Sequence record: OK040170.1
Strand: one strand, 5' to 3'
DNA length: 64,000 bases
Shown in pieces: positions 7,748-54,784 of this stretch; position 1 is the first letter of the stretch, and the number at the start of each line of letters is the position of its first letter. Position numbers and translations under genes: made by a program. The notes below the pieces were generated by a model that was not told where the DNA came from, ran no database searches, and was given only the letters and a program-made list of their open reading frames with translations.

Positions 7748-8410
7748 ATGAGCAAAAACAGACAAGACCGTATGCGTAGCCGTATGGCTGAAGCAAACGA
7801 ACTTTCGGATCAAGCCTCCAAAGTAGAGCAAGACCGAGTCAATACCCGCGAAGTACCGGAAGGCACCGACAGCGCTGCCAGCGTTGCTCAGGACTCTCCG
7901 ATTGGTGTATCTGTACAAACAGCTGCCCCTGAGCAAACAGCTCAGGTTAAGACTGTTGCTGACGTTTACGCCGGTAAGAGCGACACTGTTCGTTCTATCA
8001 TTATCCATCTGGAAACCTACACGCAGGAAATGGCGCCGGGTCGTTACATGACTCCTGACCAAATCCTGAGCAATCAGAAAATGCTGTTCCGCAATCTGCA
8101 GCAACTGGTTAACCTGCCAGACGCCGGCGAGTTCGCTATCTGCTTCAGCCGCCTGCTGAAACTGGTAAACGAAAACCGCAACAAAGCATTCGCTATCAAC
8201 ATGGTGATGCGTAACATGTCTGCGATGCCTCAGGGCGATAACCAGCTGAACAACTACCGTTTCTTCCTGGACACGGTAATCGCGTTCTCTGATCCGGCAC
8301 ATCGCCGTCTGAACATCAAAAAATGGAACCTGCAACAAGCGTCTCTGTTTGCCCTGCCGGCATTCCGTGATCGCCTGGCCGGATTCATTCGTGAGATCTG
8401 CGGCGAGTAA
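7748..8410 (+). CDS. Hypothetical protein
   Basis: 220 aa, AAGGA RBS, strong codon bias, TATGT motif upstream at 7717. Confidence 0.85.
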   Translation: MSKNRQDRMRSRMAEANELSDQASKVEQDRVNTREVPEGTDSAASVAQDSPIGVSVQTAAPEQTAQVKTVADVYAGKSDTVRSIIIHLETYTQEMAPGRYMTPDQILSNQKMLFRNLQQLVNLPDAGEFAICFSRLLKLVNENRNKAFAINMVMRNMSAMPQGDNQLNNYRFFLDTVIAFSDPAHRRLNIKKWNLQQASLFALPAFRDRLAGFIREICGE

Positions 8411-39877: not shown

Positions 39878-42166
39878 ATGGCAAGACCATCGAAAAGCGC
39901 ACTGCGCGGCAACCTGACCAAAAATCTGGTTGAGAAAATCCACAATGCGGTAATGCGCAACGTAAACAGCCTGGGCGAAGGCTCTGCCGCTGGCGTGATG
40001 TCCGTATCTCTGGAAAGCTACAACGACCTGGGTGTTAACGCTGCTGACGTTGACAGCACCCTGGATAACCTGACCCAGGATCTGGCCGAAGCGCAAAGCG
40101 ATGCGGTTGGTGCAGTAAACGCAATCGAGCAAGGTCAGTCTGACGGCGCCATCGTTCATGGCGGCGAGTTCATCGAAGAGAACGGTAACAAAGTAGCTGT
40201 TGAAGCTGCCGCTGTTCTGGCGATGTCCTTCAAAAACCCAGGCGCTTACTACAAGGACGGTTATTCTAACCCGGCCTTCGAAAGCGGCGTTATCGTCCAC
40301 AACATGGTTTCCTCCGGTGCCAACGGCGCCATCGCGACTCTGCCGGAAAGCAGCCGTCCGTCGTTCGAATCCTTCGACGAAAAAGAAACCGAAAAATGGC
40401 GTGAACACAGCTACGCTATCAACATGATGGCCGCTAAACAGCACCCATTCGCTGAACTGTTCTACCGCACTCAGATCATCACTCCTGACCAAGCTGGCTT
40501 CGTAATGTCGATCCGCCGTAACATGGTCTGGGAAACCTACCAGGGTACTGGTCTGAAAGGCGACGCCGTTAAATTCCAAAAACGTAACATCCTGCAAGGT
40601 CTGCTGGACTACACCGTTCTGGAAAGCAACAGCACCGAACTGATCCCGTGCATCCACACCGGCGAGAACGATGACCAGTTCATCGACCCGACCCTGGTTG
40701 CACCGCGCAAAGTTGTTCAGTCCAACGAAGAGTTCGAAACCAACTACCTGAAATTCGGTGTTGGCTTCAACCTGCCAATGCTGGCACAGACTCCTTCTCG
40801 TCTGCAGAAAGGTTCTCCAACCTTCTCCGACTCTCTGGACAGCCGTATCGCGCTGAAAGATCTGCTGGTAACCGTTTCCAAAGGCGGCACCAAAGAAAAC
40901 GTGAACTTCTTCGTGAACCGCGACCAGTACGCCGCGTACACCGCAACTCGCGAATACAACTTCCGTCAAATGCAGCTGAAATTCCTGTCGACCGTTTCTG
41001 TTAACGCAGAAACCAAAACCGTTGAAGGCGCGGAATCCGCTAACCTGAAAGGTCTGATCGACGCTGGCTACAGCATGGAACTGGCTGTTGGTATCGACGG
41101 CGAAGTAAACGTTGAAACCGGCTCCGGCGAAACCTACGCACGTCCTCTGAAAATCGCTAAGATCTTCGACAAAGACGGCGTTGAAATCGCACTGTCCGAC
41201 GCGCGCGTTGCCGCTCTGATCGCTGGCCTGACTTTCGAAGCTGCGGGTTACACCCTGGAAGCTCGTCTGACCAACATCAACCAACTGGAACTGGGCCTGG
41301 CAATCGACTCCGACGTGATGAAACACGGCTTCATGATCCCAACTCTGCCGCCGCTGGTTATCATCAAGCCGGCTCTGCAAGACGAAGAGAAAGTGTATCC
41401 GCGCATCGAAGCGCTGACCACTGCTTACCGTGTGCAGATGCGTAACAACGCAGTAACCACCCTGCTGAACCGCCGCGATACTCTGAAAGCCTACCTGGGC
41501 GTTGGCGTACCGCACCCGATCGAATCTAACCAAGGCCTGGAAGGTGTCGGCCAATACTACGTGCGCCCGTACTACATGGAAGCCGAAGTAGATATCCTGA
41601 AAGATCTGAACAACCTGACCTCGGCTGCTAAGCAGACTGACATTCAGGGTCTGTTGGTTAGCAAGATCAACGAAATGGTTTACACCGCTGACCAGCTGAC
41701 TGGTTACACCGCTGCTCTGGAAGCTGCCTTCCCAGGCCGTACTCCTAAGCCGCACGTAGCTATCGGTACCGACATGCGTCTGCCGCAGTACCTGCAGATT
41801 CCTGGCGACGACCGTACCGTTGGTATTGGTTACGACTACACCATCGCTCGTATCTCCGACCTGCGCATGAAAGATCAGATCATCATGACCTTCGTGCTGC
41901 CGAACGTTGACGAGCCGCACCCGCTGCAGCACGGCGTACTGGGCCTGATTCCGGAATACCTGGTTAACTTCCAGATGATCCGTAACCAGCGCATCGGTAA
42001 CGAAATCCGTCTGACTCCGCGCTACCGTTACTTCAACTTCCTGCCGATCATGATGAGCATTACCGTCAAGAACCTGGAAGAAGCAATCGCGGCGCGTACT
42101 GCTCAAGCGAACGACGTTAAAGTCACCAACGCTGCCGATTTCAAAGGCGACGCGTCTGGCGGTTGA
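39878..42166 (+). CDS. Major capsid protein (phiKZ gp120-like)
   Basis: 762 aa, strongest codon bias in the window, SFESFDEK maturation site, QHPFAELFYRTQIITPD; position next to dnaB. Confidence 0.92.
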   Translation: MARPSKSALRGNLTKNLVEKIHNAVMRNVNSLGEGSAAGVMSVSLESYNDLGVNAADVDSTLDNLTQDLAEAQSDAVGAVNAIEQGQSDGAIVHGGEFIEENGNKVAVEAAAVLAMSFKNPGAYYKDGYSNPAFESGVIVHNMVSSGANGAIATLPESSRPSFESFDEKETEKWREHSYAINMMAAKQHPFAELFYRTQIITPDQAGFVMSIRRNMVWETYQGTGLKGDAVKFQKRNILQGLLDYTVLESNSTELIPCIHTGENDDQFIDPTLVAPRKVVQSNEEFETNYLKFGVGFNLPMLAQTPSRLQKGSPTFSDSLDSRIALKDLLVTVSKGGTKENVNFFVNRDQYAAYTATREYNFRQMQLKFLSTVSVNAETKTVEGAESANLKGLIDAGYSMELAVGIDGEVNVETGSGETYARPLKIAKIFDKDGVEIALSDARVAALIAGLTFEAAGYTLEARLTNINQLELGLAIDSDVMKHGFMIPTLPPLVIIKPALQDEEKVYPRIEALTTAYRVQMRNNAVTTLLNRRDTLKAYLGVGVPHPIESNQGLEGVGQYYVRPYYMEAEVDILKDLNNLTSAAKQTDIQGLLVSKINEMVYTADQLTGYTAALEAAFPGRTPKPHVAIGTDMRLPQYLQIPGDDRTVGIGYDYTIARISDLRMKDQIIMTFVLPNVDEPHPLQHGVLGLIPEYLVNFQMIRNQRIGNEIRLTPRYRYFNFLPIMMSITVKNLEEAIAARTAQANDVKVTNAADFKGDASGG

Positions 42167-42217
42167 ACGCTCGCAGAGGCCTTTGAAGAAACCTTACCGG
42201 GTTTCGATCCGGCCTAG
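42164..42217 (+). other. Putative UGA readthrough extension of the MCP (X-TLAEAFEETLPGFDPA)
   Basis: TGA-A stop, 16 in-frame sense codons to TAG 42215-42217, all upstream of the terminator; the peptide matches motifs in ORFs 50639 and 54251. Confidence 0.7.
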
Positions 42218-42227
42218 GCCACAAGCC

Positions 42228-42264
42228 AATAAACCAGGGACCTTCGGGTCCCTGGTTTATTTTG
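42228..42264 (+). terminator. Strong intrinsic terminator after the MCP
   Basis: AATAAACCAGGGACC-TTCG-GGTCCCTGGTTTATT followed by TTT. Confidence 0.92.
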
Positions 42265-42295
42265 CCCTATTTCCATATCGACTTAAGTTCATGTA

Positions 42296-42303
42296 TATAT
42301 TAC
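42296..42303 (+). promoter_or_regulatory. phiKZ-type early promoter motif TATATTAC
   Basis: Exact consensus upstream of the operon containing the non-virion RNAP subunit, where an early promoter is expected. Confidence 0.7.
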
Positions 42304-42387
42304 TACCTTGGAGTTGTGATGGAGTCGCGATCCATTACTAAGTTCTAACAGATCTGTTTCAACAAATTCTATTGGGGTACCATTACC

Positions 42388-43425
42388 GTGACACTTAAGA
42401 AGAGCACATGGAGAACAAACAGTACTATCCTGAACCCTAAACGGTTGGATGTACTGAATAAAGAACTGGAGGCATCTCAAGTAACAATCGAAGTACGCGT
42501 TGTTAACTTGTTGAACCACCCGGTTATGGTTAAAGAGAACAGCGGCAATCGTCATGTAGTAAATCCGAAGAACGTACCTGCTGCTGGTCGCTGTATTGCG
42601 ATCAGTGTTGTATTTTCTTACGCCAACAGCTTAGTTAAAATTAACGCTGACCACGATTACTCTGAGGAGTACATTCACGATGTGCTCGAACGGTATAAGG
42701 GATTTGCTAGCGTCCATGTCGATGACACGGATGTTTTCAATCGCTTTAATCGTAACTATTCTCGTCTGGTAATGGCTTTCGACGAGCGTAATCTGAAGTC
42801 CTTAGGTAATCTGCTGGAGATTGCAGAATGGGGTATTAGTATCGACTGTAGCAGAGATGCGGCGACTAGAACCCTAGAGTCTGAATTTATCGAGGCTCAT
42901 TTACCGAATGTGAAACCCGATAATGATTGTCGTTATAGTGGCGTATGTGTCACTTTAAACGATCCTGATAATCGGCTACCAAGAGCATTCTATCGGATTG
43001 GCAGTGAGGTATTCGAGATAGATCTAGATCGAACGGCCGGTTGTGAACCGGGCGTCGAGCTGGCTGCTTGGAACATCATGATGCCGTCGATGGTGCCGAT
43101 GGAAGAAACTCGAATGAAGTTCTCTATCGACGAAGCATTGTCAGGGGAAAATCCATTGGGGTTGAAAGTATTCACATCTTTGGAAGAGGCTTATGCTTCT
43201 CCAGAAAACGAACTCAAACGAGTTAAGGACGAAGTAGCGAAAGAGAAAGTCAAACAGCGAGATGATAAGCGTACCAGTGTTCGAGAAGAAAAGCTGAAAT
43301 TCGGTCATGGTATCCTTAAGATCTTTAATGAGGCCGTGAAGACTACGTTACCGATATTAGTGAGTTGGGGTGCCAAGTTGTTTGGTATCTTTAAACGTTC
43401 TTCTTCAATAATGGCTTTAATCTAA
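42388..43425 (+). CDS. Hypothetical protein
   Basis: 345 aa, GTG start, hydrophobic/basic C-terminus. Confidence 0.75.
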   Translation: MTLKKSTWRTNSTILNPKRLDVLNKELEASQVTIEVRVVNLLNHPVMVKENSGNRHVVNPKNVPAAGRCIAISVVFSYANSLVKINADHDYSEEYIHDVLERYKGFASVHVDDTDVFNRFNRNYSRLVMAFDERNLKSLGNLLEIAEWGISIDCSRDAATRTLESEFIEAHLPNVKPDNDCRYSGVCVTLNDPDNRLPRAFYRIGSEVFEIDLDRTAGCEPGVELAAWNIMMPSMVPMEETRMKFSIDEALSGENPLGLKVFTSLEEAYASPENELKRVKDEVAKEKVKQRDDKRTSVREEKLKFGHGILKIFNEAVKTTLPILVSWGAKLFGIFKRSSSIMALI

Positions 43426-47786: not shown

Positions 47787-50585
47787 TCAGGGTGGCGCCA
47801 GGTTGTCGTCTTCAGCATCTTGGAACGGATCTTCGTTTGCACGGTCACCGCCAAATTCATCTTCACGACTACCGAAGTCATTACCGCCCAGGTCACCTTC
47901 TCCGAAGTCTTCGAACTCGTCTGAACCCGTATCGAATTCTGAGTCACTGGAGCTATTGTCGCTACCCCAATCACTACCGCCTCCGAAACCGCCTTGGTTA
48001 GCGTTTTCAATTGCTTGACTCAAGTCAGGGTTAGTTTCCTTCGTAACTTCCAAGCGGTTCTCACGGAGCTGACGAATAACTGCAGCGGTGTCGCCCAGGT
48101 TATGTACCAGGTTAGCCATGTGCGCATTCAGCTCTTTAGAGAAGTCAATCGCAGGGTTATCTTCGCTACCTACACGAGTCAGTTCACTCAGACCAAAGTC
48201 CATCCCCGTCTTAGCCAGGTACTCACGTTTGAAGTAAGCGGCCACGTTAGCTTTGAGGTGATTGATCTTATCTTGGTCTTCGTCACCCAGAGATGGCCCG
48301 ATGAGTTCTGGAGAGATGTAGTTCTCAACCATGTCATCAATCCATTGAGAGACTTTGTCGTATTCTTCTTTCTGGTTCTCGATCCGGTTAGATTCAGGAC
48401 GAGGAAGTTCCAGATAAAGGACGCGGAAGAACTCTTCAATGGCATCGGTATATTGCAGTGAGTATGGGTTATCCATATCGTTGCAACGGTACTCTTCTGG
48501 GAGCTGGTCGTTGTGTTCACGGAAGATCTCTTGGATGCGCCCAACCAACGTACCGTCAGACAAAGTATAAGACTTAACAAACTTCTTACCGTGTTTGCAA
48601 GTGTCATCCTGAATCATCATGATACGTTTTGCGTAAAGCTGGTTAGTTGTCCAGCGAGAGATAGCAAAGTCTGCCTGGGTAGTCATGTCCACCATTTCAG
48701 GTGTTACGAACAGACCCATGTATTGCTGACGTTGCAATTCACGAGAGAACTCTGGATCGATTTGTTGACGTTGAGATTGGAACTCAGAAACATCGACTGT
48801 CGTGTTAGGCATACGCGGGTTACCTTGGACTTCAATAACCACACCCATGGAACGAATAACACGGAACATCTCAGCAGCAGACGTTACGTCTGTCGGAGTA
48901 CCGCCAGCCTGTTGACGCATGAACTCATCGATCATGACGTGATACGCTTTGTCCGGATCAGGGTCACGAGGGTCAATGTTCATGGTAACTTTAGTACGGC
49001 CAACTGCGTTTTTAACCCCGGCCATGAAGTTAGCAAAGGTTGTCATTGCACGCAGAGCGGATACTTGCTTGATGTCATCCATCAGGGATTTACCCATGCC
49101 GTTCTTGTCGTAGTCGTATGCAAAGTACGCAACGTTCTCAACAGGTACGAATACCATGTGAGTACGCTGGTTAGCAAACTTACGGAACAGGAACAGACGC
49201 ATGATATCTTCGTTCCAACCCAACTTAACGTTACGGCCAAGCAAACCGTTTTTAATACGGTTAAGTACGTTCTCTTCCAGAACCTGGTCGAAGATACGTA
49301 CACGCTCAGCGGCGTTAGTTTTATCAGCATCGTAACAAAGACCGGAACCCAACATCTTAGTCTGTTGAATAAGTGAAGAGGTCTGGTTCATCTGACTGTC
49401 GCCGTTAAGACCATTGTTACCGTTCTTAACAGCACGAGCGATCTCGTCGGTTACATCCAACGGGTGACCAAGTTCATCCAGGAGAATAATGTAGCCTAAG
49501 TGGTTGCGAGGCTCACCTTTAGGGAAGCACGGAATACAAGATTCACTTGGTACTTTAATAACCAGCGGGTGACCAATAGAAGAACGAGAAGCTTCAGCCG
49601 CCGTTGTCATTACCTTAACACGTTCCATCGCACTACCGTTGTCGCGATAGAGGCTGTTGGCAAGGGTGCGGATCTCCTTGATATGACCGTTACCGCCGCT
49701 AAAGGACTCGTTGGAAATACGAGTAGTCGAACGGAAAGAACGGTTCATTCGCTTCTGGTTGATCCGGTCACGAACCTTACCTAAACCGAGAACTGCAATG
49801 TTATCGGTAATGGTACACGCGTCGTTAATGCGCGTAGGTGTTTCACGGTCACCGGCTGGGTTCCAGAAGAAGTTTTCCATGCTAGGAGTGCTGACTTCGC
49901 GTCGCTTCTCTTTCTTGGCTTCTTCTTCAGTAAGACCTGGGTCGCCCAAGATACCTTTACCTGTATGTTTCAACGTACCGTCTTTAAACTGTGATGCAAT
50001 GTGGGCCGCGTACATTTCGTCGGTCATTGCAGCAGATTCGTTAGAGACGCCGTTATAGGTACGGTCGTTGATGATATCGTCGATTACTGCTTCAGGAACG
50101 ATAACGCCAATCCAAGCACCGTAGTCGAACAATGCTTCACCGATGATCTCCGGCAGTTTATCGCGGAGAGGGTAATAACCACCATCACCGAAATGTTCGC
50201 GGATAACTTCCGTGATTTCATTCAGTATAGTAGGACGAATTTCTGAATCTTCTGTTTTAAAGACCAGCTCGCCGTCGAACATGTCTACAGGAGAAAGGGT
50301 GGTGGAAATGATCATTTGTTTGATCAGTTTCAAATCGCTACTCAGCTGCAGGATAGTTTCTGCATCCAAGTTCTTCTGAGCACGGTTTCCGACGATGTGG
50401 TCGAAAATAGTCTCATTATGTACCTTAACACCTTCACCCTGGCTATGATCACCGGTTAAATGGTCACGTACCATCTTCGTCATGATAGACGTGGCAGCAG
50501 GCGTATTTTCTAACCATTTCGTGGGTTTACTCCGAACACTCGTATCGGGACCACTACTGGTAAGAGTAGGTTTCTTCATTATCAT
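47787..50585 (-). CDS. Portal protein (phiKZ gp129-like)
   Basis: 932 aa; SIGHPLVIKVPSESCIP...YIILLDELGHP; SNES/SMEN processing-like sites; acidic Gly-rich tail. Confidence 0.85.
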   Translation of the reverse strand: MIMKKPTLTSSGPDTSVRSKPTKWLENTPAATSIMTKMVRDHLTGDHSQGEGVKVHNETIFDHIVGNRAQKNLDAETILQLSSDLKLIKQMIISTTLSPVDMFDGELVFKTEDSEIRPTILNEITEVIREHFGDGGYYPLRDKLPEIIGEALFDYGAWIGVIVPEAVIDDIINDRTYNGVSNESAAMTDEMYAAHIASQFKDGTLKHTGKGILGDPGLTEEEAKKEKRREVSTPSMENFFWNPAGDRETPTRINDACTITDNIAVLGLGKVRDRINQKRMNRSFRSTTRISNESFSGGNGHIKEIRTLANSLYRDNGSAMERVKVMTTAAEASRSSIGHPLVIKVPSESCIPCFPKGEPRNHLGYIILLDELGHPLDVTDEIARAVKNGNNGLNGDSQMNQTSSLIQQTKMLGSGLCYDADKTNAAERVRIFDQVLEENVLNRIKNGLLGRNVKLGWNEDIMRLFLFRKFANQRTHMVFVPVENVAYFAYDYDKNGMGKSLMDDIKQVSALRAMTTFANFMAGVKNAVGRTKVTMNIDPRDPDPDKAYHVMIDEFMRQQAGGTPTDVTSAAEMFRVIRSMGVVIEVQGNPRMPNTTVDVSEFQSQRQQIDPEFSRELQRQQYMGLFVTPEMVDMTTQADFAISRWTTNQLYAKRIMMIQDDTCKHGKKFVKSYTLSDGTLVGRIQEIFREHNDQLPEEYRCNDMDNPYSLQYTDAIEEFFRVLYLELPRPESNRIENQKEEYDKVSQWIDDMVENYISPELIGPSLGDEDQDKINHLKANVAAYFKREYLAKTGMDFGLSELTRVGSEDNPAIDFSKELNAHMANLVHNLGDTAAVIRQLRENRLEVTKETNPDLSQAIENANQGGFGGGSDWGSDNSSSDSEFDTGSDEFEDFGEGDLGGNDFGSREDEFGGDRANEDPFQDAEDDNLAPP

Positions 50586-50638: not shown

Positions 50639-53209
50639 ATGGCGGATACCACGCAACGATTGTACGTTGATGGCGCAATGAGTCTAGCGCAGACGATGAC
50701 AATCAAGTTCAACGCCGGTGCGGTAGCGATCAACAATTATTTAACCGAAATAGGTTACACCGTTGACCCTAATGTTCCATCCACTTGGCGTTACTACATG
50801 AACCTTGCTGGCAAGTATCATGTCAGTAATCAGCAAATGAAAGTGACCTCCTTGGACACCTTGGAGGAGATTGACTTCACATATGATAACCTCTTAATCC
50901 ACCGAGCTACTAAAGCAGCCTATAAGTACGGTTCCCGTTACTACAATGAACTTGTAGAACAATACCCAGAACAGGAATTGCTAATTAGGGGCGTTTTATG
51001 GCCAGTGGATATTGACAAGGCGATTGATGCCAAGGACTTCACTATCCTTTATTACGATAGTGACGAGGTTGATCCCAATGAAACGTATTTGATCCAGGAT
51101 CTCCAAGAATGGATTTACCGGTTTACGTATCGTTGGTATCTAGTATTTGCTGCAGCTGTACAAAAATATTACCCGGCGACGTTTTTTGGGACTTTATTTA
51201 TTCACCTGGTTGGCGAGATAATCAGTATTCGTGAGAACTATTGCCGTACTCAATACGTGCATAGCTATCACCTTTGGGCGTACCTTGGTTCACACGGTCG
51301 TCTGAATGCGTACAAGGATTACGTCAACATCACCCAGGCGTTGTGGTTGTACCGTAATATTCGCTACATCGATAACCACGCCGGTAAAACGACTACCTTC
51401 GATGATCTTATCCTTAATATCCTGACAGCCCGTAACATCCCGCTGACAGCTTATTTCCTGCGCCATAACTCGAAGGATGTTCCTGAGTCTATTCTCCCTG
51501 AAGGGGAAGTAGCTAAGGATCCTAAGAACTACCTGGCAGAGTCCGTTCAAGGTATCGAACGAATCTCAATTGGGGAAGCTCTGGATAACGAAGTTAACTC
51601 GGCTAAGGATAACGATAAGTATCTGGCCAAGCAGAAAATCGATGTTCCTATTCGAGTCGCTAACGCCATTACCGGTGAGCTACCTACTAAGGTACTCGAG
51701 TCGGTCATGATTGACCGTTCAGATTCTGTACCGCACAAGTTTGTTGATACGTTAATGGGTGAGTGGATCTATCTGGCGACTGAAGGTCGTTACGTAGCAA
51801 ACATCACCATCCCTAACCCGGCTACGCAAGAAGCCATGTCGATGACGGTAAGGGAAGCATTGATCCTTTGGGTCTACTGTGCGATGCGTCAGTTTGAAAT
51901 GGTACTGGAAGACGTCCCTGATCTGACAGCCTGGTTTGTGCAACGTCTAGCGGCTCCTGAGTTCTCTGAACTGCGTGGTGTGTGCGAACCTAAGTATGTT
52001 AGTGAAGCGGCTATCTTGATGGCTCTGACTGAGCATACTCCGGTGTCTACTATTATCTCGACTGAAGCGTTCTACAACACTGTAGCTCAGATTCAAAGTA
52101 ACATTAACGCCCATCGCGTCATGTACACGCGTCAGCAAGACTTCCGTGCTCGTGGTCAGATGGAAGTGATGACCAATCGCTTTTACATCAACAAGAAATG
52201 TCAGTTGTCAGCCACACCGATTAAATACGCAGACTGGTTCCACACCAAGAACTGGGATATGGAGTTGAGTTCCCCTGAAGCGTATTCCGATTTCTGTTTC
52301 CAGCTAATAGAAGTTGCAACGGGTGCTAACTTGCGCTCGACAATATCGGTGTCCGATGTACACAGCGCCATGATAGCGATCATGACTCAGCTGTCTAGTT
52401 ACTCTGTACAGTACGTCCACAAAACTAACGCATCTCCAAACATCATTGTTGATAACTTGGCGATTCGTTTCGGTGGCATTGAGTCTCGTCCTAGCGCTGA
52501 CTTTAAAATTGACCAACGCGTTGAAATCATTAACCAGTACCAACGTGGTAAACTCTCTCCTGACAAGTCTGCATTTGAAGGGATTGAGATTGGCTCGAAG
52601 TATATTCATGCGCCACACTTCTACCGTGTGTTCTCGTCCGTGGACTTCCTGCCAGATACCCATGTTGCTACTCGTCACCAGATTGAGATCGCTGAGGTTA
52701 GGTTCAAAGGTTCGCTTGCTAAAGATATCGGTCTTGAGATCAGTAAACATGATCTTGACGGCCTGTGGCTTTATCTGGCAACCGCTCGTCCAATTAACGA
52801 AGTCATCACTAACCCAAGGTTACCTGGGTTGTGGGTACGCGTACCTCGTGAAGATGAGTACTTACCTAACGAGATTACCAAAACCGATATTGAAGGACTG
52901 TGGACGAATGTTATCCCTGGCCCAGAGAAATTGGTCATTGGCAATAAACCACTCCCAGGTCTGTGGTTAGAGCCTATCGTTCCTTACGAGTTGGAAGACT
53001 TTAAAGAACGTCTCGAAGGTTTCGATCCACCTGAACCATTTAAACCAACTACGTTGGCTGATGGTTTCGATGAGAATCTGGGTGGCTTCGTTGGGTACAT
53101 TGAACCTGAGTTTGACCTCTTCAATATAGAGGAAGAACTTCCTGGCTTCGATTCGCCTGATAGCGAACCAAAAGCACCTTACGATTTCTCTGCTTTGTTT
53201 GGCGAGTAA
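50639..53209 (+). CDS. Baseplate-associated virion protein (phiKZ gp128-like) with C-terminal LxGLW and LxGF repeats
   Basis: TWRYYMNLAGKYH, VTSLDTLEEIDF, YPEQELLIRGVLWPVDI; divergent from the portal gene. Confidence 0.7.
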   Translation: MADTTQRLYVDGAMSLAQTMTIKFNAGAVAINNYLTEIGYTVDPNVPSTWRYYMNLAGKYHVSNQQMKVTSLDTLEEIDFTYDNLLIHRATKAAYKYGSRYYNELVEQYPEQELLIRGVLWPVDIDKAIDAKDFTILYYDSDEVDPNETYLIQDLQEWIYRFTYRWYLVFAAAVQKYYPATFFGTLFIHLVGEIISIRENYCRTQYVHSYHLWAYLGSHGRLNAYKDYVNITQALWLYRNIRYIDNHAGKTTTFDDLILNILTARNIPLTAYFLRHNSKDVPESILPEGEVAKDPKNYLAESVQGIERISIGEALDNEVNSAKDNDKYLAKQKIDVPIRVANAITGELPTKVLESVMIDRSDSVPHKFVDTLMGEWIYLATEGRYVANITIPNPATQEAMSMTVREALILWVYCAMRQFEMVLEDVPDLTAWFVQRLAAPEFSELRGVCEPKYVSEAAILMALTEHTPVSTIISTEAFYNTVAQIQSNINAHRVMYTRQQDFRARGQMEVMTNRFYINKKCQLSATPIKYADWFHTKNWDMELSSPEAYSDFCFQLIEVATGANLRSTISVSDVHSAMIAIMTQLSSYSVQYVHKTNASPNIIVDNLAIRFGGIESRPSADFKIDQRVEIINQYQRGKLSPDKSAFEGIEIGSKYIHAPHFYRVFSSVDFLPDTHVATRHQIEIAEVRFKGSLAKDIGLEISKHDLDGLWLYLATARPINEVITNPRLPGLWVRVPREDEYLPNEITKTDIEGLWTNVIPGPEKLVIGNKPLPGLWLEPIVPYELEDFKERLEGFDPPEPFKPTTLADGFDENLGGFVGYIEPEFDLFNIEEELPGFDSPDSEPKAPYDFSALFGE

Positions 53210-53275: not shown

Positions 53276-54115
53276 ATGGCAAACGCGAATTACTACAATA
53301 AGCCCACTAACCGATTAGTCTTTGACTTGATCAAAGAAGCTAACCCGGAAGCGGACTTCTCAGAAGATCAAGTAAGGTTAACGAACTTTACCCAGAACAC
53401 CAATGGCGACCCGTTACGTAACACCGCAGGTATTCTGAAAGCAATCCCTGGCATGGGCCGTGAAGGTCAAGAGAACCTGACCTGGAACCGTCCTGCACTG
53501 AACGAGATCTTTAAAGAGATCAGCGTTTACTGTTCTCCTAACGGTAAGTTCAAGAAATCTGACTTACTGAAAGAAATCAACAGTAACTATAACTTCCAGC
53601 TGGACGCCGGTGATATTTACGACGGTGTACTGAACCTGTCAACTCTACCGACCAAAACGGTTATCGTGGTACGTCCTACCTGTCCTGCTTTTACTGGTCA
53701 GTTAGAGATTACCATTGGTGATCCTAAGATCGCTCTGGAGACGGTTATTCGTAACCCTGACCTGGATGGCCTGGCTTACCCTACCAACCAGTCTGAGAAG
53801 ATCCAAGGTCCCCTGTACATGTATGCCAATGACTACACGTACGATGCCACTGGTCTTCAGCAGTTTGGTTACGGCGATCCTATCCAAGGCGAACTCCTGG
53901 AAAGCCTCAACCGTAAATCGCCAGACACCTGGGTACTGAAACCTACCCCTGCTCCGTGGAACGCTAACGGTGCTGACGTATGGTACAATGGCCCGACTGC
54001 TCAGGCTCCGGTATACGTGAACACTTCGTACCAGCGTTGCTTGGTTATCCACCTGGATAAAGAGTATTGCTCTAACGTTGCCGGTCACTTGATCCTGCAT
54101 TACAACATGCCATAA
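53276..54115 (+). CDS. Virion structural protein (adaptor-like domain + DLDGLAYP motif + C-terminal domain)
   Basis: 279 aa; N-terminal domain and C-terminal WNA...YNG region look paralogous to ORF 55842. Confidence 0.7.
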   Translation: MANANYYNKPTNRLVFDLIKEANPEADFSEDQVRLTNFTQNTNGDPLRNTAGILKAIPGMGREGQENLTWNRPALNEIFKEISVYCSPNGKFKKSDLLKEINSNYNFQLDAGDIYDGVLNLSTLPTKTVIVVRPTCPAFTGQLEITIGDPKIALETVIRNPDLDGLAYPTNQSEKIQGPLYMYANDYTYDATGLQQFGYGDPIQGELLESLNRKSPDTWVLKPTPAPWNANGADVWYNGPTAQAPVYVNTSYQRCLVIHLDKEYCSNVAGHLILHYNMP

Positions 54116-54250: not shown

Positions 54251-54784
54251 ATGGCACGTATCGCGTTTAACCCGGCAAACTCTGCCGATGATGAATTCAC
54301 TCGTCTCCTGGTAAATGGTACTACCATCCCAGAGCTGAAAGCAGTTAAGCTGACCACTGATTACACTGTAACCACCCCTGCCGCCGCTAACACCGGTGAG
54401 AAAGATGGTAACACCGTTATCGGCCTGACCCCTGCGGCTGGCAGTAAACTGCTGAAAGGCGACGCACGTGAGTTCTACTACGATCGTCTGAGCATCGCTT
54501 CTGAACTGACCCGTAAAGCAGTTAACCTGAAGTCTGCTGACGCACTGACCCCGGCTAACCGTGACGCGTTCGCCCTGACCTGCGTAAAAGCAGTTTGGGA
54601 CAAATTCGTTGCTGCTGACGTCGTGTTCAAAGAAGACAAAACTGAAGGCGAAGTTGTAGCGTACGTCTACACTATCAAAGCCGACAACAAAGTCTTCAAC
54701 GGCGAATTCACTATCACTTCCGGCGACCAGACTCTCCAGTCCTTCAGCGAGAACCTGGGCGGCTTTGACGCACCGGCTGCGTAA
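54251..54784 (+). CDS. Probably abundant virion protein ending in TLQSFSENLGGFDAPAA
   Basis: Start moved to ATG 54251 (TAAGGA RBS); MCP-like codon bias; own terminator. Confidence 0.8.
   Translation: MARIAFNPANSADDEFTRLLVNGTTIPELKAVKLTTDYTVTTPAAANTGEKDGNTVIGLTPAAGSKLLKGDAREFYYDRLSIASELTRKAVNLKSADALTPANRDAFALTCVKAVWDKFVAADVVFKEDKTEGEVVAYVYTIKADNKVFNGEFTITSGDQTLQSFSENLGGFDAPAA

Follow-up and report, generated by a model that had tools for sequence, protein, structure and literature searches.

The window analysed here, a stretch of 64,000 nucleotides from sequence record OK040170.1, belongs to the Serratia phage BUCT660/2050HW (Moabitevirus), a jumbo phage with a dsDNA genome of 272 kb. The ORF list places the major capsid protein gene at 39878..42166 on the plus strand, with 762 codons and a terminal TGA. 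The capsid ORF matches the Pfam profile PF25620 (PhiKZ_MCP) with E=4e-228 over residues 106-738, equivalent to profile positions 2-634 of 635; this full-length match assigns the protein to the phiKZ gp120 family, and the gene is annotated as "major head protein" in the BUCT660, 2050HW, and Moabite records. The last ~24 capsid codons (42092..42163, plus strand) lie outside the Pfam domain and encode a linker rich in G, P, T, and A; in the Moabitevirus records and in 46 database homologs, the length and sequence of this linker vary with in-frame indels, whereas the capsid body is conserved. The ORF closes with GGC GGT TGA, and this TGA (42164..42166, plus strand), followed by an A at position 42167, is the candidate leaky stop. 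Translation past the TGA yields an in-frame extension of 16 sense codons (42167..42214, plus strand) that encodes the peptide termed the tag in the following, and that is closed by a second stop, TAG (42215..42217, plus strand), also present in Moabite and Totoro. Folding places an intrinsic terminator hairpin with a 15-bp stem, a UUCG loop, and a subsequent U-run at 42228..42261 on the same strand; the RNA fold of positions 42150-42265, which contains this hairpin, has a predicted energy of -55 kcal/mol (z=-5.3). A simple consensus terminator scan did not list the 42228-42261 hairpin, although folding does show it; the Moabite record annotates the homologous hairpin as a terminator.

This arrangement had been described in an earlier note, prepared without database searches, which proposed that the capsid protein gains a docking tag by readthrough of its UGA stop; the end of the capsid ORF, the TGA-A context, the 16 in-frame codons, the TAG, and the terminator all held when the coordinates were rechecked. 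The same applies to the tandem stops that the note had pointed out at the ends of other genes (8410, 12624, 23949, 54115, and 54784). Sixteen open codons after any given stop are expected by chance with a probability of ~0.45 and are not significant by themselves; the significance of the extension therefore has to come from its relatives.

Among 37 distinct lineages of phiKZ-type major capsid genes, 20 have a conserved in-frame extension behind the capsid stop, which is UGA in 19 lineages, UAG in one, and UAA in none. One further lineage ends in TGA without a recognizable extension, and the extension is absent in all 16 TAA-ending lineages; the association between stop type and extension is strong (Fisher p=1e-9), uncorrected for phylogeny. 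The extensions range from 15 to 55 codons. In the one UAG case, the lineage L051, the stop has changed to TAG and the peptide has been retained. The motif encoded by the BUCT660 extension recurs in the extensions of PCH45, SPLA10, PhiEaH1, Goslar, and 10 metagenomic lineages, and in phiKZ, the PhiPA3-like PA1C, and 201phi2-1, the TGA is followed by another, different conserved peptide. Stop and downstream frame persist even though these capsid proteins share no more than 46-69% identity with that of BUCT660; in Goslar, where the identity drops to about 29% over the C-terminal part, stop and frame are still kept. Since numerous independent genomes contain the TGA, it can be attributed neither to a sequencing error nor to a recent nonsense change in a normally continuous gene, both of which the earlier note had named as grounds for refutation. 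A scan of bacterial genome contigs found no relative of the capsid gene, and the scan of IMG/VR and metagenomes contributed only a few loci.

The extension is not universal among the nearest relatives. The Klebsiella phages resembling phiKp24, which are the closest relatives, have no capsid extension, and the capsid stop of phiKp24 is TAA; as these phages nonetheless retain the corresponding motif in the tail of their baseplate wedge protein, the capsid tag appears to be dispensable in some lineages. A related motif, L-x-G-L, is found at the C-terminus of the capsid protein itself in RAY, SA002, LucasX, and Proteus phage 10, and wedge protein tails of the RAY type repeat it. A survey of 142 representative capsid proteins yielded only two clear cases of such a constitutive C-terminal motif; most of its pattern matches represented a structural strand ahead of the C-terminal arm.

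The extensions evolve like coding sequence. Between BUCT660 and either Moabite or Totoro, the extension contains no indel, and 11-14 of its 16 residues are identical; nucleotide differences are distributed over the three codon positions as 4/2/9 and 5/2/9, respectively, with pS of 0.68-0.78 and pN of 0.20 in this ungapped comparison. The peptide is thus retained at a nucleotide divergence of about 33%. Within subgroups of the motif-type extensions, pN/pS ranges from 0.13 to 0.37 and third-position changes dominate; indels are in-frame only, synonymous sites are near saturation, and both other reading frames contain stops. For the phiKZ-type peptide behind the TGA, the coding evidence is weaker (pN/pS 0.41-0.74). 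As a caveat, protein-guided alignments push pN/pS downward for the longer extensions, a bias from which the gap-free Moabitevirus comparison is exempt; the Moabitevirus extension in turn is short and available in only three distinct versions, and the Goslar extension remained outside the selection analysis, having no close relative in the phage collection. A conserved stop followed by a conserved frame with a protein-coding substitution pattern is expected of programmed readthrough, and the capsid genes show it; lack of amino acid conservation behind the stop, which the earlier note would have accepted as a refutation, was looked for in the relatives, and the outcome was strongly the opposite.

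Two alternative explanations of the extension do without its translation. It could be an untranslated RNA or DNA element of the 3' UTR, with a role in stability, processing, or termination, whose resemblance to a peptide is incidental. The position between the stop and a strong terminator would suit such an element, and folding predicts a weak hairpin at 42177-42215 (z=-2.2), in which one of the changes between BUCT660 and Moabite looks compensatory; the post-stop stretch of phiKZ also folds very stably (z=-5.2). Against this view, the peptide is retained despite the divergence in nucleotide sequence, changes concentrate in third positions, indels come in multiples of three, and the encoded peptide matches the tails of real proteins in the same genome. 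No RNA fold common to the lineages was found among the 16 examined, most of which had z-scores near 0, and an Rfam scan of 41900-42450 (limit E<=10) returned only a chance match to Atu_C8 with E=1. A purely untranslated element is consequently regarded as very unlikely. The same judgment applies to the second possibility, that the extension is a decaying relic of a constitutive capsid motif, such as RAY and SA002 have now, cut off by a nonsense mutation. Some lineages indeed have a related motif before the stop, and the 16 codons of the Moabitevirus extension are few compared to the 36-55 codons found in others. An untranslated remnant, on the other hand, would have gained stops and frameshifts, whereas synonymous sites are saturated between lineages that retain the frame, the motif, and both stops; moreover, the stop is always of the leaky kind, once switched to TAG and never to TAA.

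The manner in which the stop would be passed can be narrowed down. A separate small gene downstream of the capsid stop was rejected, as there is no conserved start codon; the first codon after the stop is variously ACG, ACT, GCT, CTG, CTA, or GAA. Production of the long form by frameshifting, in the manner of T7 10B, does not fit an extension that continues the zero frame immediately behind the stop. Of the three stop codons, UGA is the leakiest, and a C at position +4 promotes readthrough (review PMC7026636); in the 20 lineages with an extension, the base following the stop is C in 11 cases, A in six, G in three, and T in none. Stop identity and following base thus fit a leaky context, with the reservation that leakiness in Serratia is inferred. 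Many cases of programmed readthrough, though not all, also involve a stimulatory RNA structure 3' of the stop; the weak 42177-42215 hairpin occupies such a position in BUCT660, but Moabite and Totoro do not retain it. The leaky stop claimed in the earlier note is supported across lineages, as relatives without the peptide use TAA; its premise that the capsid gene is the most expressed one, and the leakiness of UGA-A in this host, are assumptions.

Dedicated decoding of the stop, by a suppressor tRNA, by selenocysteine insertion, or by a release factor 2 that the phage weakens late in infection, would be a further alternative. In its favor, stop recoding by suppressor tRNAs occurs in some large phages, and a late change in termination would suit a late gene. 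The evidence from the genome speaks against it: no suppressor tRNA was found in the 272-kb genome, which contains only a tRNA-Tyr(GTA) and an annotated tRNA-Ser(GCT), and among 287 crude gene calls, the 67 closed by TGA are of ordinary length, so that genome-wide stop reassignment with a phage-encoded suppressor is not indicated. Selenocysteine insertion is likewise not supported; there is no SECIS element in the scanned region and no conserved hairpin beside the UGA, and one lineage uses UAG in its place. Dedicated decoding is regarded as very unlikely, on evidence that bears on tRNAs and selenocysteine rather than on release factors. A prohead-protease site, a clamp-binding tag, and a degradation tag were also considered for the peptide and dropped for lack of support.

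The peptide behind the capsid stop has counterparts in baseplate proteins encoded downstream. The portal protein gene (47787..50585, minus strand; BUCT660 annotation) is divergently oriented to the adjoining ORF 50639 (50639..53209, plus strand), which encodes a homolog of the phiKZ baseplate wedge protein gp128; its residues 1-758 match phrog_3222 with E=4e-244, and tblastn aligns it at 34% identity over 80% of the query with phiKZ-like phages at the PHIKZ128 locus. Homology and position next to the portal gene jointly identify a gp128-type wedge protein; the structural role is taken from phiKZ, where gp128 was identified as the baseplate wedge protein by cryo-EM (PMC13250141). The C-terminal tail of ORF 50639 contains three copies of the motif (52991-53032, 53051-53095, and 53126-53158, plus strand). 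It is followed on the plus strand by a gene for a gp127-like virion protein (53276..54115; DUF7941, Pfam PF25613 with E=8e-81, phrog_1037), whose phiKZ counterpart gp127 is located in the outer star lobe of the baseplate (PMC13250141), and by a paralog of the same family with 177 residues (ORF 54251, 54251..54784, plus strand; phrog_1037 with E=1e-6), of which the last 17 residues (54731-54781) constitute the motif. In four homologs of ORF 54251 (78-99% identity), the motif residues are kept and neighboring residues vary; a single-chain structure model of this protein reached a pLDDT of only 38, too low for use. The peptides that the earlier note had seen in ORF 50639 and at the C-terminus of ORF 54251 were thus confirmed, together with its assignment of the motif to baseplate or tail proteins.

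The sharing of this motif exceeds chance expectation. The pattern F.[DE].L.GF occurs five times in the six-frame translation of the entire 272-kb genome, in every case inside the window; shuffled genomes contain a mean of 0.43 occurrences, and none of 200 shuffles reached five. One match is doubtful: it belongs to a protein of 220 residues without a known function (7748..8410, plus strand; phrog_18957), close to the C-terminus, lacks the acidic and proline residues found behind G-F elsewhere, and may be due to chance. In local alignments, the BUCT660 capsid tag scores 38-42 against the baseplate tails of its own genome, compared to a maximum of 31 in shuffled controls, and only 30 against the PCH45 capsid tag; for the PCH45 tag, in turn, the scores are 41 with its own wedge tail and 23-27 with the BUCT660 tails. 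The spacing from F to L differs by one residue between BUCT660 and PCH45, in capsid and wedge protein alike. The tag is therefore closer to the baseplate tails of its own phage than to the capsid tags of other lineages. Gapped pairwise scores were used for this comparison because the one-residue difference in spacing defeated an ungapped position matrix; when built from distant lineages, this matrix did not lift the Moabitevirus copies above background (top score 16.3 vs. a shuffle maximum of 16.7). Searching the six-frame translation with a profile HMM based on motif copies of distant lineages was uninformative, the model being too short. The wedge tails of 120 homologs show motif repeats in many lineages; phiKZ gp128 itself has no tail motif.

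These results establish the sequence anatomy and its conservation, the coding-type evolution of the extension, its association with the type of stop, and the sharing of the motif; translation of the extension is strongly inferred to occur by near-cognate readthrough, without evidence at the level of protein or ribosome. Taken together, we moderately favor (a probability of roughly 0.55, from sequence alone) the reading that low-level programmed UGA readthrough supplies a sub-stoichiometric, tagged capsid protein with a docking peptide. In this scenario, most ribosomes would stop at 42164-42166 and release the ordinary major capsid protein; in a minority of cases, a near-cognate tRNA of the host would decode the UGA, and translation would continue for 16 further codons and end at the TAG. 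The near-cognate tRNA at UGA is most likely tRNA-Trp; the residue actually inserted and the frequency of the event are inferred only. The product would be a minor capsid subunit with a flexible linker ending in a short linear motif, which is probably helical, with hydrophobic residues every 3-4 positions followed by G-F and a proline. In phiKZ and phiKp24, the C-terminal arm of the capsid protein lies at the capsomer centre and contacts the outer protein gp244 at pentamers (PMC11297242, PMC9700779); since the arms meet there, the tag is predicted to project at the centre of probably only a few capsomers. Its exposure on the outer surface is an inference, as the capsid face that the C-terminus reaches is unsettled for BUCT660. 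As the tails of the wedge protein and of the gp127-family protein end in this motif too, the tag is interpreted as a docking peptide, whose partner would have its usual binding place at the baseplate periphery; no such partner has been identified. Termination efficiency would then set the copy number of tags on the capsid. The overall interpretation of the earlier note is supported by this comparative evidence; its more specific proposals, that a few percent of subunits are extended, that the extended protein exists, and that it recruits head fibres or decoration proteins, are inference only.

It remains possible that the readthrough product is made and selected, but that its tag is not a docking site of the baseplate type. 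The tag could plug or mark the central pore of some hexamers, provide contacts during assembly, scaffolding, or maturation, or act as a signal for quality control or turnover; its likeness to the baseplate tails could then stem from a shared assembly chaperone, and not from a shared structural partner. All evidence for translation applies equally to this alternative, no partner has been found, and the phiKp24-like phages dropped the tag as the wedge-tail motif stayed. The docking interpretation is favored over it to the extent that the tag follows the baseplate tails of its own phage in sequence and spacing, as expected for one shared binding pocket, and that the tag is preceded by a flexible linker, which points to a peptide that is tethered and exposed.

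A bolder version of the docking interpretation can be entertained as a possibility: capsid readthrough may characterize the whole family of nucleus-forming jumbo phages, in Moabitevirus, PCH45, PhiEaH1, and Goslar as well as, with another peptide, in phiKZ, the PhiPA3-like phages, and 201phi2-1, and may provide capsomer centres with a few copies of a docking helix of the baseplate type. Capsid and baseplate periphery would then have unseen sub-stoichiometric appendages or adaptors in common, in numbers set by termination efficiency, and these would have escaped icosahedral averaging as well as standard protein databases. PCH45, Goslar, and possibly phiKZ, PhiPA3, and 201phi2-1 are model phages for which the usual combination of cryo-EM and proteomics would miss the product; raw mass-spectrometry data that already exist would suffice as test material. 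For annotation, TGA-ending capsid genes of the phiKZ-type family merit a check for a second product. By tying the capsid to the wedge tails, the motif also offers an approach to the question of how jumbo phages anchor their large peripheral baseplate and fibre platforms. In the papers found in the literature searched, the post-stop region of the capsid gene is not addressed, and no description of a leaky capsid stop combined with a baseplate-like tag was found for tailed DNA phages. If the proposed mechanism is correct, tailed dsDNA phages would provide a conserved case of stop-codon readthrough in their main structural gene, for which the known form of recoding is frameshifting.

The individual elements of this proposal have precedents in other systems. 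In the A1 protein of phage Qbeta, as in the present case, a single UGA closes the main coat gene and termination efficiency sets the stoichiometry of the long form; Qbeta, a small phage with an ssRNA genome, has a coat protein of unrelated fold and adds a large domain to it, compared to a linear motif of 16-55 residues here, so that the likeness to a jumbo-phage capsid of the HK97/phiKZ type is functional only and implies no homology. The CP-RTD of luteovirids (poleroviruses and enamoviruses) is likewise a minor capsid protein made by readthrough, with an exposed extension for interactions (PMC9553062, PMC7026636); these plant RNA viruses differ in depending on eukaryotic ribosomes and long-range RNA signals, and in the large size of their readthrough domain. 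T7 gene 10A/10B, Lactobacillus phage A2, and Listeria phage PSA are closer in kind, being dsDNA tailed phages in which recoding provides a minority of C-terminally extended capsid subunits (references in PMC5009743); their long forms arise by -1 or +1 frameshifting at slippery sites, and not in the zero frame after a stop. The closest structural comparison is the C-terminal arm of phiKZ gp120 and phiKp24 gp372, the same end of a protein of the same family, which in hexamers builds a six-fold bundle or pore and in pentamers contacts gp244 (PMC11297242, PMC9700779); in those studies, the protein was modelled only to its annotated stop, and no extension was described. Finally, phiKZ gp128 and gp127 are the homologs or paralogs of ORF 50639 and of ORFs 53276 and 54251; gp128 differs in having no tail motif, whereas many other lineages have the repeats. 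In phiKZ, gp139 dimers form bands that join the fibre platform to gp128 and have their end at gp127 (PMC13250141).

The phage is phiKZ-like: it carries a PhiKZ_MCP capsid protein, split RNA polymerase genes and a tubulin-like gene, and is therefore a phage of the nucleus-forming jumbo type. Over the 1 kb around its capsid stop, identity is 100% to Serratia phage BUCT660 (BUCT660 coordinate minus 62000 gives the window coordinate) and 99.9% to vB_SmaM_2050HW (Moabitevirus mv2050HW). The capsid ORF (39878..42166, + strand) terminates in GGT TGA, the following base being A, and continues in frame on the same strand for 16 sense codons up to TAG 42215-42217. Folding of 42228-42261 shows a strong intrinsic terminator, made of a 15-bp hairpin and a U-run, whose counterpart in Moabite carries a terminator annotation. 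Since this terminator comes only after the extension, the extension is part of the capsid mRNA. The TGA-A context, the in-frame run to TAG and the terminator at 42228, all claimed in the earlier note, were upheld by sequence and folding; taken alone, 16 open codons after a stop have a chance probability of ~0.45, and hence little meaning. A weak hairpin (z=-2.2) is predicted within the extension (42177-42215); in Moabite, both partners of one stem pair are seemingly changed relative to BUCT660, and the hairpin is not the best predicted fold in Moabite or Totoro.

The close relatives Moabite and Totoro retain both stops, TGA and TAG, and the 16 codons between them. Flanking nucleotide identity to the window is 95% in Moabite and 89% in Totoro; the extension differs at 15-16 of 48 nucleotides, distributed over codon positions as 4/2/9 and 5/2/9, respectively, leaving 11-12 of 16 residues unchanged (pS 0.68-0.78, pN 0.20). 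The last ~12 capsid residues before the stop form a linker rich in G, P, T and A whose length and sequence are not the same in the three phages; read from sequence, the arrangement is a conserved peptide preceded by a variable tether.

Translation past the capsid stops of phiKZ-like genomes, which the earlier note had proposed, was carried out on 37 distinct lineages from a phage collection, IMG/VR, metagenomes and Logan assemblies (L-numbers denote fetched loci), and revealed conservation at the peptide level. An in-frame peptide of the same type follows the stop in 17 of the 37, with TGA in 16 and TAG in one; ten of the 17 are uncultured, and the others include PCH45 (L014:1947-2090), SPLA10 (L013:1961-2125), PhiEaH1 (L012:1968-2021) and Goslar (L031:1398-1481). 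The layout is a hydrophobic and acidic stretch, then G-F (in a few cases A-F or I-F), with proline 2-3 residues on. Column counts anchored on the motif F, with two sequences mis-anchored, gave F and the subsequent proline in 17/17, G ahead of F in at least 11/17, L three residues ahead in at least 13/17, and acidic residues at -5 and -6 in 12-13/17. The extensions measure 16-55 codons and can be grouped into sub-types that share a conserved second half; within a sub-type, pN/pS is 0.13-0.37, synonymous sites are nearly saturated, and all indels preserve the frame. Nothing recognizable followed the stop in any of the 16 TAA-ending lineages, including the nearest outgroup, the Klebsiella phiKp24-like phages, and the motif was absent from the called capsid protein in 46/46 database homologues. 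The association of stop type with extension is strong across the 37 lineages (Fisher p=1e-9; shared ancestry uncorrected, several independent switches). As limits on this evidence, the sequences are short, protein data are lacking, and the statistics carry no phylogenetic correction.

The single TAG lineage, an uncultured one (L051:2959-3075), has an otherwise typical extension; here the stop type has switched and the peptide has not been lost. In Ralstonia phage RP12 (L030:1404-1451), TGA-A closes the capsid gene and the next 15 codons are open but contain only D-G-F; this was too weak to call, and RP12 was scored as TGA without recognizable extension. Many phiKZ-family capsid proteins (representatives within P0171-P0315) end in proline, for example ...TP, ...AP or ...VP; proline is known to hinder termination.

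The capsid genes of phiKZ, PA1C (PhiPA3-like) and 201phi2-1 also end in TGA, followed by a mutually conserved in-frame peptide of 26-28 codons (L033:1437-1514, L053:1395-1475 and L052:1398-1481; with stops, L033:1434-1517, L053:1392-1478 and L052:1395-1484). This peptide is unlike the motif type and rich in R-Y-L-E-x-G-like units; its indels are in-frame only, its pN/pS reaches only 0.41-0.74, and the phiKZ RNA past the stop forms a very stable hairpin (z=-5.2). The case for readthrough in this group is suggestive but confounded. In RAY (L032), Proteus phage 10, LucasX and SA002 (L055, L056, L057), a related L-x-G-L..P motif forms the capsid C-terminus ahead of TAA, and every subunit would therefore carry it; some lineages may thus have the motif constitutively. 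The L-x-G-L unit occurs four times in the tail of the RAY-like wedge protein Bosolaphorus gp7 (L058:2660-3052).

The earlier note's claim that similar peptides occur in ORF 50639 and ORF 54251 also held, in pattern counts and pairwise scores. Six-frame search of the 272-kb genome for F.[DE].L.GF yielded five matches (0.43 expected), all within the window: the capsid extension, two of the three tail copies of ORF 50639, the end of ORF 54251, and, doubtfully, ORF 7748. The ORF 7748 match (7748-8410; 220 residues, phrog_18957, unknown function) lies in the C-terminal region, lacks the residues that come after G-F in the other copies, and may be due to chance. ORF 50639 is a homologue of phiKZ gp128, a baseplate wedge protein serving as an attachment point for the outer fibre platform (2026 phiKZ atlas, PMC13250141); ORF 53276 is gp127-like (DUF7941), with ORF 54251 as a weak paralogue. 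An internal L-D-G-L-x-Y-P-type site in ORF 53276 (53735-53785) was the best match of the motif matrix, at a score not exceeding shuffled background. Beyond their conserved body, gp128 homologues (n=120; P0047-P0166) often have a tail of tandem L-x-G-(L/F/Y) units ~20 residues apart, with Pro or Trp next and widely lineage-dependent copy number; phiKZ gp128 itself lacks these repeats. In PCH45-like phages, the extreme C-terminus of the gp128 homologue closely matches the phage's own capsid extension. In pairwise scoring, the capsid tag of BUCT660 reached 38-42 with the baseplate tails of that phage (shuffle maximum 31) but 30 with the PCH45 capsid tag; the latter reached 41 with the PCH45 wedge tail and 23-27 with the BUCT660 tails. 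The spacing from F to L amounts to three residues in the two BUCT660 proteins, against four in the two from PCH45. Such lineage-wise co-variation is expected if capsid tag and baseplate tails share one binding pocket, an inference for which no partner was found; gene conversion between tag and tails is another possible source of it.

No suppressor tRNA was found in the whole BUCT660 genome, read in pieces; its only tRNAs are tRNA-Tyr(GTA) and an annotated tRNA-Ser(GCT), which are annotated as adjacent (L038:3831-3997; BUCT660 53831-53997), ARAGORN confirming tRNA-Tyr only. Of 287 crude gene calls, TGA closes 67, TAA 193 and TAG 27, so TGA serves this genome as an ordinary stop. No Rfam family, SECIS included, matched the capsid stop region, no hairpin common to the lineages was found, and the codon directly after the stop is neither conserved nor a start codon. 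In the 20 lineages with an extension, the stop is followed by C in 11, by A in 6 and by G in 3, and in none by T; UGA is the most readthrough-prone stop, and C at +4 favours readthrough (PMC7026636). Given this leaky context and the lack of suppressor, SECIS, shared hairpin or post-stop start, near-cognate decoding by a host tRNA would be the simplest mechanism, at an unknown rate.

At every hexamer centre of phiKZ, the capsid C-terminal arms come together as a six-helix bundle with a pore, and they contact the outer protein gp244 at pentamers (PMC11297242); in phiKp24, whose capsid has 1615 subunits, a twisted six-loop pore is built from the last 16 residues (PMC9700779). By analogy, a tethered tag would emerge where the arms meet, in the middle of a capsomer. 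A hexamer may lack room, or a need, for six tags; by inference, this would account for a stop having been selected over a sense codon.

The literature searched, incompletely, contained no description of readthrough in a jumbo- or tailed-phage capsid gene; the earlier note likewise knew of none in jumbo phages, which amounts to no more than absence of evidence. Among known analogues, Qbeta A1 and the luteovirid readthrough coat proteins arise by readthrough, and the long capsid forms of T7, A2 and PSA by frameshift.
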